A DNA stretch of 64,000 nt from Oopsacas minuta. Lineage: Eukaryota > Animalia > Porifera. The DNA is taken from positions 186,001-250,000 of the forward strand of contig JAKMXF010000133.1 in assembly GCA_024704765.1 (NCBI GenBank), read 5' to 3'. The notes beneath the pieces were generated by a model that saw only the letters and a list, made by a program, of their open reading frames with translations, did not search any database and was not told where the DNA came from. The stretch's first letter is position 1, and each line of letters begins with the position of its first letter. A program made the position numbers and the translations under genes. Shown here in pieces: positions 10,333-48,468 of this stretch.

Positions 10333-12534
10333 TTAATACTTAGTTTTGGCGCCTTTATCCTGTCCTCCTGTCCCCCTCCTGCCCCCATAGTACCCAGCGT
10401 TATCCCAGTGATGCTGTTCCCTCCCAGCAGACCCCTTCTTCCTTGTGTGATGCCCTCTCTGTTCATGTTTGTCCCCTCTGGTAGCTTCTCTTGTATAAGC
10501 ATTCTGATGCTGATGGTGTTGGTAACTAAGATGAATAGGAAATGTGAATAATAATATATAATCTGTCCTGCCAACTGTCTAGGGTGGGTTTGAGGATAAA
10601 TTAGACCCCAAGGGTGAAGATAGGGATTCATATATCATGAGAAATTTTAGGGGTAATGCCATGTACCATTAGGTGCTTAAAATATGATAAACTAACCCTC
10701 TGTTATCAGGTTTTCTATTGACAAACTGTGGGGCATGAACCGGTTGTATTGGTTCTACCTCATCCTCATCAGACCCCTGTTGGAGATCAGTATGATAAGT
10801 ATATCTGTTAGAGTACATTCCTTTAGGATTTAAGCGCTCAATACACTCTGTATCTTCCTTATCAACACCTACGTCACATGGAATGTCATCATATGTATCA
10901 TCATACTCATCGTCATATTCTAATTCCATATTAGCTAACTTTAAAGTGGCGTCACTCAGATCCCGATTATTAAGGAAATCTCTTCCGTCACAAAATCGAT
11001 CCTTCTTTCCTCTATGAATAAGACTGGTGTCTATATCATCCCTTGTGAATATGTCAAATTTGTCACCTGTGAAAATATTCCTCCGTTGTGACACTAATTC
11101 CAGTGGTTTTGGAACTAACACCTCTTTAATTCTGGCAGTTGGTGGTATCTCAATAGTTGGTATTCTTTCGAATAGAGTGTTGATTGCATGCGGAACATTC
11201 AAATTGTGTAATCTCAAAACTTCTCTAATACTCGCAGTATCTACATCAGGAAGGATAGCTTGAATTGAAACTATAGCTTCTTCTAGTTCTGGTTCTGGTT
11301 TTGGTTCCGATTTAGGCTCATCTGAACTGAGCGGTTCGGTCAAATACCCGAATTGGATAGCATCTATAATACCGGAATCTTTCATGCGAGAGAATTCGGT
11401 TTTCAGGTCAAAAATCTTTAAATATTCACTTAACAGATGTTTGGTTCCAATTAGGATATTACAAATAGTGAGAAAATCTTCAAGTGGCGCCTGAATATTC
11501 TCCAAAACGAGAGGTGTTACTTGGAATTTCTTAAAATAGCAATTCTCAAAGATATAAGAGAATATTTTACAGAAATTAAACTTAGTCTTTCTCAAACTAC
11601 TTTTGATAAATTCCTGTTTGTCACATAGTTTGTGTTTGTATAGCAACCACAATTGTACAATTCCTGGCAGAAACAATTCATAAAATGTGACGAAGTGGTT
11701 CATGAACAAAGGTGTGAAACACTGACTTGCAGACGGACAAGTGACGAAAAAACTCTCCAAATTAGTAAAAATATCCTCCACAAATAGGATTATTTCGTAA
11801 AATCTGTCAAAACTTAATTGTTTAGTTGGATTATCTCCCAAACGTGCCAATTTTCTGTCCTCATCTCCAAGGTGTAACTTACAGCCCATCTCCTCGCTGA
11901 TTTTAGACAACATTGAAAGAGTCGTCCGAATCATTTCTTGAATATCGTAAAAATACTTTTTCTGTTTACGGAAAATTCCCTCTAACATTTCTCCCAACAG
12001 ATTTCTGTTTGAACTAAAAATCTGACACAAATCGAGTATTTTCGGTAAATCAAACAGATAATTATCATAAAGCAAATCAGCAAAGGCCGTTGCACTGAAA
12101 TCAGGATAAGTCCGATTTTTCGTGTATTGTGCCTCTCTATTCGTCCCCATTCGGAGGAATACTTTGAACATTACTTCAAGGTAGGACTGAAAGACCTCGT
12201 GACCCAAAAGCTCTGGGGAGTCCTCTATAATATCAGGGGTAATCTTCAAAAATGAATCGAGTAAAATATGGAGTTTTGGATCATAAATGACGTGTGACCA
12301 AAATATGTGTAAAGGAAGTCGAAGTAAGGTGATGACGTCATCACGGAGGGCGTGTAGGGAGCGTAACCATAAGTCTTGGTCGTCGTGTAGGAGAGCAGGA
12401 GGGTATTTCCAGTAGGGAAAGAAATCTATATCTAACAGCCATTTCTCATGGAGAGAGGGTATTTCCTCAATCTCGCTTGTAATAGGATTCGTATAAGAAA
12501 TTAAAATACTTTCAAGACCAGATTCTTTCTCCAT
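10333..12534 (-). CDS. ASCC2: Activating signal cointegrator 1 complex subunit 2 (CUE domain), two exons (12534-10696, ~10534-10333)
   Basis: LLRLPLHIFWSHVIYD, LFDLPKILDLCQIF, CUE-like SIQAILPDVDTASIREVLRLHNLNVPHAINTLF, RRNIFTGDKFD and YDDEYDDTYD. A phase-2 GT-AG intron gives an R/G-rich tail. First ATG (MEKESG) is at 12534. Confidence 0.9.
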
Positions 12535-13239
12535 AGAAATTGCTAATATTTTCCTGATTAAAATAATACTAACGGGTAAGTATCCTAGAATATCTTGCAA
12601 TATTCCAGAAATGCTCGCTCTGCATTACAATATATATCAAGAACAAGCTGCAGAGTTCGAAATGATCGCTGAATTACGTATATGTTACATAGATGGTTAG
12701 AGACCATATTTGTGCTATTTAAGACTTTGATGTAAGCGGGTATCTCCATATATCCGTGTTCGCCTAACGGGAGTTGAGTGTATTTGATTATTCCTAATAA
12801 GTAATAACACCTTGTATGTATTATATTGATAGTAAGGGACTGTAGGTTTTGTATTATACCTCATGTCTCCATTGGACAGCAAGTTACTATTTGCATTCAT
12901 AACTTGTATCGCGAACTATGCTTGTATATATTTAAGAATATTATCAGAATTCGGTAAGTCCGCTATTCATGATTACTGATAGTCGGTTGGAATTATGCCA
13001 TGAGAGACTGAGCCCCCTGGGTCAAATGGAAGTTTGACCTATTTAACACCTCCTCAAATGCTACGCGTGTGCTCAATAAATCTACAATCCTCACTCACAT
13101 ATGTTCACTCAACCTAAAACTGCCATATAGATACAATACGAATTCATAGCAATATTATACAACCAAACTGAATGAGTTTAGCTCTACTATAGTCTAATAA
13201 ATATACACAATATATTTTGTATTATTTGAAAGGTGGGAT

Positions 13240-13512
13240 ATGGTATGATTTTCGTGTATAGTGATTCCTCTCCTTTTCTGGATTTGGAAATCACTGATCC
13301 CTAAGTTAAGGGAAAAAATACCTGCTTTAGTTGACAGGTTTTTCCCCAAAATGTCAATCGCAGAGAGAGCAGAATTCGACCCCAATTCAATATCTTGTCC
13401 ATTAGCTGGACTGTTTCCGAGCCGAGCGTTTGATGACGAGGATTTAGTTGAACCAGATGAAGACAGAGGTGAGGTGAATAGCCCTGAAGGTGTGAAAGTA
13501 AAGGAGGATTAA
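13240..13512 (+). CDS. C18orf32: C18orf32/UPF0729-family small membrane protein with an in-frame TGA at codon 3 (13246-13248), predicted selenocysteine; 90 aa
   Basis: ATG GTA TGA TTT TCG TGT ATA GTG ATT CCT CTC CTT TTC TGG = MV(U)FSCIVIPLLFW, gap-free against recalled human MVCIPCIVIPVLLW. Ends in KVKED (human KKKD). SECIS downstream. Confidence 0.9.
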
Positions 13513-13530
13513 CTGAGAGAGTAAAGTGGC

Positions 13531-13595
13531 GCAATCTAACACGTGACGATTCGTATGGAAACTCGATTGAGTGATATGAATCTGATATTTATTGT
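13531..13595 (+). promoter_or_regulatory. Eukaryotic type-II SECIS element in the 3'UTR
   Basis: GTGA at 13543-46, AAA 12 nt later (13559-61), mini-stem CTC/GAG, helix II GATTCGTAT/ATATGAATC, 3' core TGAT at 13583-86, helix I GCAAT/ATTGT. Confidence 0.9.
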
Positions 13596-13977
13596 TTACG
13601 TCATTGCTTACTTTACTGTTAATTGAATTAGAATTAAGTGTTATAGTAAATATTTGTGATACATGCATAGCAACCAAGTATGAGACGTATTTCACCGGGA
13701 TATTGGGTTTTTGGCGGGGAAATATAAATTTTGAGCGGGATACAGTAACCTTTGGAAAATTTTCTAAATTTAACAAAAAAGCTAATTGTATAGAAAAACG
13801 CGGGATAATGACAACTTTCTGAGTGGGGATTATGGTTTTTGGCGGGAGGAGAATAGACATCACTGCTTTTAGGCGGGAAAATGTGGAAATATACGCGGGA
13901 TAATAAACTCAAATTGAAGTTTCTCCTATGGTAATAGAAAATAGAAAATAATCTCATTTAGAGTTAATTAAAATAAA

Positions 13978-14155
13978 TACAGTAGACTCCACTTAATAGG
14001 GTCACGTCGGGACCAGACCATTTTGACCCGATTTGTTAAGCGGAATAAAGGTGTTGGCCCGCTTAAACCGGAGTAATTTAACACTATTTGTATGGTTCTG
14101 TTTCTGGCAGAGCGGCAGATTAACCGGGTAGCTCAATTAAGCAGAGTCTACAATA
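13978..14155. mobile_element. MITE family 3 (Tc1/mariner-pogo-like, TA flanks)
   Basis: TA-CAGTAGACTCCACTTAAT...ATTAAGCAGAGTCTACAA-TA terminal inverted repeat; second copy at about 4452. Confidence 0.8.
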
Positions 14156-14923
14156 AATGTGAACTAACCTACTTTACATGTGAGATCAGAGGTTGAGAAA
14201 TCCATCAAATTTATAAGCAACCCATAATGTATCGTAAGTTATCATCAAATTACATAGAATTGTATTCATTAAAATAGACCCATAAGATTATATTCAATAT
14301 CAGATATAAGTAGTTACAATACTTAATTATATTTGCTTTATAAACTTCTACAAACTTTCATATAAAAAAACTTACAGGTAAGTTGGCTTTTATGCCTGGG
14401 TGTCGCTCCGACACCTTATCTTATAAAAATGAGTTTTTGATTATCTCTTGCTTTCTTTATGTATTTACCTTTCTGCTATTTTTCAGTCCCTTATATTTTC
14501 ATCTTATGGTGACGTTAAGAAGTCGTATTATGCCTAATGTGACAACTCCTACTTTACTTTTCGTATTTGATCACAGCGAGATGAAATTAGAAAGGTTAGA
14601 AGGAAGACTTAAGTTCTGTGTTACAGCTATCTAAGGAACGCGGGTGAGCCAAAATGGGAGGATTCTAACAGCTCTTATAGTGAATTACACATGTACCAAT
14701 TGTAGCAGAGCCAACCTTGGATGGCGTAGCGAAATGCGACATTACCTGGCGCAACTTGCACCATCGCAGAAGCATAAACATTCCACAAGGTATCCTAGCA
14801 ACTACAAAAGTGTCAAATTATGATTAATCATAAGATAAGATAATTAACTACAACAATCAAGTCCAATGACACTAAATTCATAAATATATTTACAAACTAA
14901 TTTGTAAAATTATCAGTCAATTG

Positions 14924-17900
14924 TTATTTTAAATTTTTCTCTAAAAAGTGTGCGATCGAATCGTTGAGAAGATTATTCTTAGAAAGAACTTTGATTTCGG
15001 CGGAAGACAGTTCGTCATTAAAATTTGCATGAAACAGACATTTCACTTTTGAAAGAAAAGTCCCCGCAAAAAGCAATTCATTTTTGTTTCTGTCAATTTC
15101 TTGGACATTTAGTTTCTGTCGAAAGAATGTTATAAATTCTGAAATATTCGGAATGCCCGCTGGACTAATCGTCACCATTTTCTTTCGGAACATATGAGAA
15201 GAGGACCATTCATTTTGGAACTCGATAGGTGTTAGGTTAAGAGGTCGCATCAAGTCTCGAGTTGTGATTAGGAGGTTAAAAAATAATCTTTGTTGAGTCT
15301 TCCGTGTGTCTTTGTAACTCAACTCGCCGCTAACTGTTGGGTTCATTGCAGGTGCTGTACACCTGATTTCTAGAGTCTCTGGGTGAGATTCGAACCCCTC
15401 CAAGCCTTCAAGTGTTAAGTGGTTATTTGTGACACTTTCTAGATGTCTCAAATTTGAAGGGAATTGGTATTTGAAGTGAATATCTTGTAATGCATCTTGT
15501 ATCTGATTAGTAATTACTAAAAATAGAACTAGAGTTTCTGGTTTAAAGACTTTCACATACGTCACACGAATATTTACATCTGAAACTAAAAAGTTTTGTT
15601 CATCTTTCGGAAATTCGTTTAGTTCCAGATTCATTTCCGGCCCTTTAGAGGGGGGGTTATAATTAGTCAAAGGAAACGATTCATTTATGAAAGCAAATCC
15701 ACTCTCATTATCGAAGTTAAGTTCTGATAAAACAGATTCTGTTTTAATACCTTTTGGTTCTGGTACTAGTTCCGTATTATCTAGCTCTATTGTTGGGTCT
15801 AACAAAGTATCTGAGAAGAGAGGGGTCTCTGAATTAGGGACCAATAGAGGTGTTACTTCCCGTTCAACAAGTACTGAATTCTGATTCGGTACTTCTGGTT
15901 GAATCAAATTGGTTAACTGAGGCTCGAGGAGATTTTCTATCCCCCCTGTAGGAGTATTTTTCTTGGGCTTGCGTCCTGTCTGGGACAAGACCCCACCGGT
16001 CCCCTGAGGTGCAAGGTGCGCGAATATGGAATTCGCCTCCTTGCGTTTTGGGTCTTCGTGATGCACTGTCGGGTGAGCATTGACTGTTGATATAGTTGTG
16101 TCAGGTTTATAATTGGTGAAATTAGAACTCAATTTTGTTGGTGGAAATTTTTTTGGTTCAAAAGAATTCAATTCTGAGTTCTTTGTTTGATATCCTTTTG
16201 TAGACCACGGACGATTGATGGATTGGTTGGAATGAAATTGTGTCGAACTCCCTTCAGGTGGTTGTGTAGATGGCAGAACTGGCTCAGGCGACACAATTGA
16301 TATAGGTGTGAATTTATTCATCTGCTTAGGCGCGATATTTGATATAGCAGGAGTAGGTAACGCTCTAACAGCTGGTTTGGGTGGAGCTTCGTATGGCTTA
16401 TAATTAATTTCTATTATTTTCTGAGGGGGCTTATCCTCCTTTCGACTATGAGGGGGCTTGTAAGCAGGAGCGCCGGTCCTCTCGGCCTCTCTGGAGAATT
16501 TAGTCAGGAACCCCAGGGTAGAATCTACTCCCATGTCCTCACAGCTCCCATCCAAGGGATGCAAGGTATCAAGTCTATATTTAGAACTTAGCATTCCATT
16601 GTATTCATTCCATCTCTGTTGCGTATCTATGTTAAGAATCAAATTTGATTGGGCGAATAAGGTGTCAATAGAATTTCTAACAAGTTCATCATGGAGAGCT
16701 AACTTGATCACTGATTGGATAATCCAATTTTGAGTAACAGCTGATCGTTTCCCCTCTCTAAAAACTTTTGCGAGTCTTGACGCGATGTCAATATGTGTCA
16801 GATTGGGACACAAATAAACGTATTCAGCTAACACCCAAGCAACAATTCTTATAAGAGAATCTGGAATATTCAAATTAGTATCTGACTCTATAAGAATGTT
16901 ACTAAAAATAGTAACTGCTTGGATACGAAATTCCTTTTCAACACTAGCGTCTCCACTGTCAATTCCTTCAGCTATCAGGCGCATTAAATTGTGCGCTACA
17001 TTATGTGGGACCAGATCACCCGCCAAACGAAATACGCGGGAGACTGTAACTAAAAACCATTCATGGTTCGGCGCGTGTTTCTCAGCTATTTCTGTAATTT
17101 TACGCGCCAAATCACCTCTAATAAACTGATCTGTGACACTTTCTAGATATTCAGTCAGTTTGCTACATATAACCGACACATTCTCAGGACCTGTAATGCG
17201 ACACAATAGTTCTAGAGTTTTCCTCTTTAAAGTGTCATCTGGGTCATCCAAACACCTCATAATTACCTCCTGATGTTCCAATGCATGCTGGGGCTCAACC
17301 TAAATGGTACAATGGAATGTATGAAAGTGTAATCTCTACAAACCGAGTGCTAGGGGAGGCAGAAACATTCTACCCGCTACTGCCCCAATTTCCCGTTTGT
17401 GGGGGTTGTACTAGTGAAAATATCAAAAGTAATATCAGTGAATTTGGTAAAAATAATTGTGAGTAATTTAATTACTATTTCCTAGCAACAAGTAATGTAT
17501 AAAGGAATGCTAGCTATAGAATGCAAACCTGTACTAAAAGAGATAGAGAAGTAATACCAAAATATTGGATATTATTACTCGGAGATGAGAGGAACCTTCC
17601 TACAGCACCGGCGGCTTTCATTATCAGCTCTGTGTCAGGATAAATACAACTTATCGTGCGGACACATTCGAAAATTAGCGCCTTCCCAATTAACTGTGAC
17701 GCCTCCTGATTGGCACGCGCTAAGCAGATATCCAACACTTCATAAATCCGTTTAGAAATACTCAAATCATCTTGTCCAATTATTGACAATATCTGCAACA
17801 TTTTTATCTGTGTCCATGGCAACACAACGGAATGATATTCAAAATCTATTGATACTCTATGTGTAACAATCTAAGGCGTGAAAATATGATAAACACTATA

Positions 17901-34713: not shown

Positions 34714-35335
34714 CGGATTAAGAGTTTATACCGAAATTCTTGGTGTTTATGAGCTGTGTCAGATCAAGTGGGGTTCGGTGTCGGGACAATATTTTCAGAC
34801 CAAGTCTACAGAAAAGGGTGCACTCACAGGGCAAAAGAGATTCGAGTAGCCGGCGAACTTTCGTGCTATTCAATTGTAAAAATAATATACTTGACAGCGC
34901 ATCACAACCTCATGTGGACCCCATAGATGTCCACATGACCTCAAAAATTGTATTGCAGCCTATGGGAAGGTGTCAACGAGTAAAATGGGTTGCACTGACT
35001 TGTAATATTCAAAATTGGTTGAAAGGAATTCCAATTGGAACAATCTCAGAAATATTTGCATCAATCACACAAATCAGCCGAAAGATGGTTAATATTCATC
35101 ACAGATTAATATCGCTATAGCAACTTAAACTATGTGAAGACACATTTATATAAAGCAATGTGGGTTTATAATATGGCATGAGAGTGTTAAACTAGTCTGA
35201 CAAAAGGCGGTACAATTCAATTTTATGGGACGTAAACACAGAATGACAACTTCGTATAAATGCTTAACAAACAAACAACAAAGAAAAGTAGACAATATGG
35301 AATATAAGTGATAGGTGTGAAAGAATAATATGTGA

Positions 35336-39371: not shown

Positions 39372-39400
39372 TTTTTGTAAGATCAATAAATCTACTATTC

Positions 39401-39461
39401 AATTTATATGCGAACACTTACACGTTTTCAATGAAAACGTGTAAGTGTTCGCATATAAATT
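39401..39461. repeat. Perfect 30-bp inverted repeat with a 1-nt spacer
   Basis: AATTTATATGCGAACACTTACACGTTTTCA-A-TGAAAACGTGTAAGTGTTCGCATATAAATT. Confidence 0.97.
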
Positions 39462-39969
39462 ACGTAATTAACTAATTATATCTCAAAAATATATACGCAA
39501 ACTATGCAATTTATCCATCTACGTATATTCTCACCTTTAGCGATAAGTATAAAGAATAATGAAAAGTTAATGCTAACACTTAAGTATAGCTAAGTTTAGA
39601 ATCCGGAATGAAAACTAAGAATATTCGTGAATTCTTAGAAATACGCTTAGAAATAAGTTAAGAGTTATTCTTAGAATTTTAGTAAATAAGGCCCCTGGAA
39701 TTTACTGGAATTTACTGGAATTTCCTAAATAGAATGTATCAGTTATGATGCATTATATTTTTCATCTCGTCCAGAAACATCGAGCTAGCGGGACCTCGCC
39801 CCATGATACGACACTACCAGCAACAGCGAATGAATCCAAGAATAGTATTAAGAGTTTTGTATAATTTAATATATTTTAGTTATCAAAATGGGGAACTCTT
39901 ATCGTACTAGCAAAATACATTAGTATATACTATGGTTAAATGTGTGTAGATTATATATATGAGATTACA

Positions 39970-48194: not shown

Positions 48195-48267
48195 GCCGGG
48201 ATAGCTCAGTTGGGAGAGCGTTAGACTGAAGATCTAAAGGTCCCTGGTTCGATCCCTGGTCACGGCA
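48195..48267 (+). tRNA. trnF-GAA: tRNA-Phe(GAA) followed by a TTTTT Pol III terminator
   Basis: GCCGGGATAGCTCAGTTGGGAGAGCGTTAGACTGAAGATCTAAAGGTCCCTGGTTCGATCCCTGGTCACGGCA; anticodon at 48228-30. One acceptor-stem and one T-stem mismatch. Confidence 0.9.
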
Positions 48268-48468
48268 CTTTTTGGCTTGAGTTGGAATTTTGTTCCAAAT
48301 TCTGGATACACCTCCGTGGGTTCGAACACCATCAGTGGGGTAACCCTTTGGACGAAAATAATAATTCTCCCAGCACGCGAAATACGGGATTTGTGAACTT
48401 TGTGTAGTTATGTATAACATTGTATCATATCCATAGTATGAATAATATTCTAATACACAAATGAATAC

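Follow-up and report, generated by a model that had tools for sequence, protein, structure and literature searches.

A probable selenocysteine form of C18orf32 in glass sponges

The locus and its transcript

We examined a small open reading frame in the glass sponge Oopsacas minuta, within a 64-kb stretch of genomic DNA (64,000 nucleotides of contig JAKMXF010000133.1, hereafter "the window"). The plus strand reads ATG (13240-42), GTA, TGA (13246-48), TTT TCG TGT ATA and GTG (13261), and the frame runs on to a TAA at 13510-12, giving 90 sense positions if the TGA is decoded. The reading frame and its surroundings comprise the following features, all on the plus strand.

13232-13650 (+), abundant unspliced mRNA, with both ends approximate
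13240-13512 (+), coding sequence of 90 codons plus TAA, beginning M-V-U-F-S-C and ending K-V-K-E-D
13240-13242 (+), start codon, with G at -3 and G at +4
13246-13248 (+), in-frame TGA, the proposed selenocysteine codon (residue 3)
13249-13341 (+), predicted N-terminal helix (residues 4-34), consisting of a hydrophobic segment, F4-W16, and then an amphipathic part ending in the FFPK motif
13534-13596 (+), SECIS-type hairpin, type 2: helix 1 at 13534-38/13592-96, core GUGA at 13543-46 and UGAU at 13583-86, helix 2 (nine pairs) at 13548-56/13574-82, unpaired apical AAA at 13559-61 and a 3-bp mini-stem at 13562-64/13569-71

The hairpin lies 22 nt after the TAA and was identified as a match to Rfam SECIS_1 (28 bits against a gathering score of 35; E 0.004 in a 1-kb search). 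When both strands of the whole window were scanned at E<=1, this was the only SECIS hit. Its core satisfies the UGAN/KGAW rule (PMC3753652), although the base before UGA is G rather than the usual A and helix 1 has two U-U mismatches. The earlier note, which had proposed a new selenoprotein family here, called this SECIS canonical, and that description needs the GUGA qualification. Minimum free energy folding of the 3'UTR gave a competing long-range fold with a weak z-score of -2.35 and was not informative.

To determine whether the TGA is real and is present in the mRNA, we used four sequencing runs from one sample and one study. X1 behaves like genomic DNA, with flat depth and one 4.6-kb contig identical to the window. 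X3 and X4 carry a second haplotype with SNPs elsewhere. None of the four runs showed a variant at 13246-48. The TGA is therefore not an assembly error.

In contrast, X2 behaves like RNA-seq. Its depth is 52 across the upstream intergenic region, climbs through 715 at 13231-35, 8.3k at 13236-40 and 62k at 13246-50 to a plateau of 250-480k, and then falls to 40k over 13539-13605, which covers the SECIS, and 4k over 13606-72, reaching zero beyond 13740. No joints were reported, and there was no step in depth at 13262. The abundant transcript is therefore unspliced and about 400 nt long, begins only about 5-10 nt before the ATG, and contains the TGA, the TAA and the SECIS. These are, however, assembler contigs from a single sample, and RNA-seq under-represents 5' ends. 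Read starts occur at 13243-13248, so that some transcripts may lack the ATG, and depth over the SECIS is about a tenth of the plateau over the coding sequence. A second ATG lies 5 nt after the first in another frame (gtATGAtt, overlapping the TGA) and opens a 19-codon ORF (13245-13304). With so short a leader it could capture scanning ribosomes, but substitution patterns show no coding constraint in that frame.

The product of the ORF is 100% identical to part of the NCBI protein LOD99_16059 (111 aa). That model joins an exon at 12611-12695 to 13262 across a GT...AG interval and so removes the ATG-GTA-TGA. It is probably an annotation artefact caused by the in-frame TGA.

The neighboring genes on the minus strand are an AP-4 epsilon adaptin (14927-17299; Adaptin_N plus AP4E appendage) and a 643-aa single-exon ORF with a weak CUE-domain match (10669-12600). 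Just downstream of the gene, at 13714-13900, five same-strand GCGGGA motifs and one GGCGGGG lie within about 190 nt. Several occur as TTTTGGCGGGA, which resembles an E2F site. The whole window holds 19 matches against 7.4 expected, and Tandem Repeats Finder does not call the region a tandem repeat. At 14066-14108 depth spikes in all runs and many contigs run on into unrelated sequence, which probably reflects a dispersed repeat. Elsewhere in the window, 35034-35110 (-) gave sub-threshold matches to several C/D-box snoRNA families (best 33.7 bits) and is possibly a sponge C/D snoRNA. At 39393-39467 and 48195-48268, a palindromic hairpin matches miRNA-precursor models on both strands, far below their thresholds, and a tRNA-Phe(GAA) gene is also present.

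Conservation of the TGA, the reading frame and the SECIS

Protein searches for relatives found only short ORFs that gene callers had truncated at alternative starts, and we retrieved their contigs. The 13 related loci (L001 to L013) fall into five lineages besides O. minuta: L001; L003/L013; L004/L012; L002/L010/L011; and L005-L009. L009 comes from run SRR11455659, which is listed as a metagenome of the glass sponge Vazella pourtalesii (PMC7426153, supplementary file 2), while the taxa of the four ERZ250-257 samples remain unknown. All 13 loci carry an in-frame ATGGTATGA, followed by [F/L]-S-C-I-[V/L/M]-I-P-L-L and a SECIS-like 3'UTR. The AP-4 epsilon gene is a neighbor both in the window and in L002, at 70.7% identity, which supports orthology and a fairly close relationship. 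An ORF at 14344-14631 (+) in the window shares a 31-aa stretch (64% identity) with L002:976-1068, which lies between the AP4E gene and the selenoprotein gene there. This ORF has no Pfam match, but depth in X2 jumps to about 60,000 in its last bin (14343-14400), and it may be another small conserved, highly expressed gene.

Between O. minuta and the other lineages synonymous sites are close to saturation (pS 0.67-0.85), yet the nine bases ATGGTATGA are identical in all 14 loci. Conservation between species begins exactly at the ATG, and the sequence upstream of it is unalignable. Codons 4-37, which lie between the TGA and the first downstream conserved Met (Met38), show pS of 0.27-0.85 against pN of 0.08-0.21, the same pattern as the rest of the gene, whereas the two other frames show the reverse. 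The hydrophobic N-terminal part is therefore translated in the frame of the TGA. Within codons 4-7, changes are synonymous at C6 (TGT/TGC) and I7 (ATA/ATT/ATC), or conservative (F/L) at codon 4.

Orthologous SECIS elements scored 34 bits in L003 (E 0.0005) and 23.9 bits in L001, also below the gathering score. The elements of L004 and L002 were recognised only by alignment, and L002 gave no SECIS hit at E<=1. In the five-species alignment, 88.9% of cells in the SECIS structure are paired, compared to 22-46% when the 3' partners are slid. Five pairs change on both sides. In helix 1, for example, L002 has A-U where L001, L003 and L004 have U-A, at two positions. The covariation score was reached by only 3 of 500 shuffles. 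The core is GUGA in O. minuta and L003, and AUGA in the others. In L010 (832-940) and L011 (686-795), two contigs from the same sample as L002, the 3' side of the core reads CGAU instead of UGAU, which departs from the KGAW consensus while keeping the GA. L010 is the highest-coverage contig (251x).

To place the protein in a family, we first searched Pfam. All five sponge proteins hit only DUF4512 (PF14975, the C18orf32/UPF0729 family), with a best E of 1.5e-4. Each match was below the curated cut-off of 27 bits, the window protein scoring 17.2 bits (E 0.008) with a query that lacked M-V-U. We then compared the sponge alignment with 15 tetrapod C18orf32 sequences by hhalign, which gave 96.5% probability and E 8.3e-10 over 49 columns, with sponge S5 aligned to vertebrate P5. 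Extending this alignment without gaps puts M1 on M1, V2 on V2, U3 on the invariant C3 and C6 on the invariant C6. The vertebrate N-terminus, MVCIPCIVIPVLLW, was checked against database sequences. An ESM Atlas feature search independently ranked UPF0729/DUF4512 clusters first (0.87; 191 of 256 features).

Two scans of JGI metagenomes with peptide patterns from the sponge proteins found no relatives. An exhaustive HMM search of 1.84 billion representatives with a two-sponge profile returned only two sponge clusters at E<=0.001, and it therefore gave no Cys-form invertebrate homologs and no Cys paralog.

Decoding of the TGA

Each of the tests proposed in the earlier note that we could run came out in favor of its interpretation. 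Although there is no direct evidence of selenium in the protein, by far the most likely explanation is that this is an intronless selenoprotein gene, a member of the C18orf32/UPF0729 family in which the first Cys of the N-terminal MVCxxC motif is replaced by selenocysteine. Translation would start at ATG 13240, and the UGA at codon 3 would be recoded to Sec by the type-2 SECIS about 295 nt downstream, giving a 90-residue protein. This is consistent with the tRNA-Sec predicted in the O. minuta genome (PMC10280926) and with the large selenoproteomes of sponges (PMC3473315). Because the gene has no intron, the early UGA should not trigger splice-dependent mRNA decay. Met1 is probably removed, since Val follows it.

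One alternative is that ATG-GTA-TGA is a minimal two-codon upstream ORF, that UGA is a true stop, and that the protein starts at codon 8 or at Met38, with the 3'UTR hairpin not used for recoding. Codon 8 is GTG, TTG or ATG in all lineages, Met38 is invariant, and the apparently very short leader favors leaky scanning. A start at Met38 is excluded by the purifying selection on codons 4-37. Initiation at codon 8 cannot be excluded formally; however, it is unlikely, as it would leave unexplained the coding-type evolution of codons 4-7, the conserved ATG-GTA-TGA and the conserved, covarying SECIS, and the aligned vertebrate homologs start at the same M-V and have Cys where the TGA lies.

Another possibility is that the TGA is read through by a near-cognate tRNA (Cys, Trp or Arg) rather than by Sec-tRNA. 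UGA may be the leakiest stop codon, and the selenium content of the protein has not been measured. This too is improbable given that a SECIS with compensatory changes is conserved at the expected place in all lineages, that sponges use Sec (PMC3473315) and that a tRNA-Sec is predicted in this genome. Moreover, low-level read-through would not fit the very abundant mRNA of a conserved protein.

The remaining alternatives are very unlikely. The splice in the NCBI model has a GT at 12696 and an AG at 13260-61, but depth in the RNA-like run ramps smoothly from about 13232 without a joint, depth over the proposed exon is about 5000 times lower, and the AG acceptor is absent in all other lineages. 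A C/D-box snoRNA or another kink-turn RNA in place of the SECIS is suggested by a weak SNORD30 match over the same bases (28.8 bits, gathering score 40, E 0.073), which is explained by the kink-turn that C/D boxes and SECIS cores both form; the C box would read GUGACGA, without the second UGA, in all lineages, the apical AAA and the helix-2 length fit a SECIS, and the element lies in the 3'UTR of an unspliced mRNA that contains an in-frame UGA.

In the favored explanation, the Sec and Cys residues would act as a selenol/thiol redox pair that forms a selenenylsulfide, with Sec as the attacking residue and a membrane-proximal substrate in the ER or on lipid droplets. If so, the invariant C3/C6 pair of the human protein is a redox center too. 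This function is inferred only from the general rule that Sec/Cys pairs between homologs mark catalytic redox cysteines, and the vertebrate cysteines could instead be acylation or metal-binding sites. It is consistent with C18orf32 and the selenoprotein SELENOT both being hits in the same screen for GPI-inositol deacylation (PMC5800811). It could be speculated further, and we consider this only slightly more likely than not, that C18orf32/DUF4512 is a previously unrecognised family of membrane-anchored selenol/thiol oxidoreductases whose redox pair, UxxC in glass sponges and CxxC in humans, caps the membrane-anchor helix and has no thioredoxin fold. The sponge form would also show that SECIS-directed recoding can work at the third codon.

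In the literature that we searched, which did not cover subscription journals, no paper describes this family as Sec-containing, and the O. minuta genome paper (PMC10280926) does not mention selenoproteins. While SECIS-dependent selenoprotein genes are well known, we consider this probably a new selenoprotein family, with the unusual features of Sec at residue 3 and a UxxC motif without a thioredoxin fold. New animal selenoprotein families are rarely found. The finding would give a testable chemical role to the invariant N-terminal CxxC of human C18orf32, a poorly understood protein that has been implicated in GPI-anchor inositol deacylation and in lipid-droplet secretion, and it would suggest a link to SELENOT. 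Sec at codon 3 is unusual for the recoding machinery, and an intronless mRNA with a very short leader would make a compact natural model for studying it. The case also shows how public annotation hides such genes.

Comparison with C18orf32 and known selenoproteins

The sponge protein and vertebrate C18orf32 are both small (76-100 aa). Both start M-V-[C/U]-x-x-C-I-V-I-P-x-L-L-W, followed by a long N-terminal helix that ends in a [FW]-P-K motif and then a disordered tail ending in a Lys-rich C-terminus. In the sponge protein the hydrophobic stretch covers residues 4-16, and AlphaFold2 predicts a helix over residues 5-34, with pLDDT of about 77 for the first 20 residues, and disorder elsewhere, although confidence in the model is low (mean pLDDT 58). 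The human protein is described in the same way, with residues 4-35 helical and 39-76 disordered, and it localises to the ER and lipid droplets (PMC12797721). The earlier note called the sponge protein single-pass, but this is not established, as a 13-residue hydrophobic stretch is short for a bilayer span and a monotopic anchor, as proposed for the human protein on lipid droplets, is equally possible. Sponge proteins end in K-[VIL]-K-E-D (H-I-K-E-D in L004/L012) and tetrapod proteins in K-K-x-D. These resemble KxKxx/KKxx dilysine ER-retrieval signals, which would place the C-terminus in the cytosol. The sponge protein differs from vertebrate C18orf32 in having the proposed Sec instead of Cys at residue 3, in the presence of a SECIS, and in its C-terminal half, an acidic FDPN...CP...DDEDL tail that is not alignable.

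We found no sequence similarity to SELENOK and SELENOS. Their Sec is near the C-terminus and lies in no UxxC motif, whereas here Sec is residue 3, ahead of the anchor. SELENOT and the SELENOW/H/M group have a Sec/Cys pair separated by two residues at the N-terminal end of a helix, and SELENOT is ER-localised. These proteins have a thioredoxin fold and the order CxxU, whereas the sponge protein has no globular fold, the order is UxxC, and the motif caps a membrane helix.
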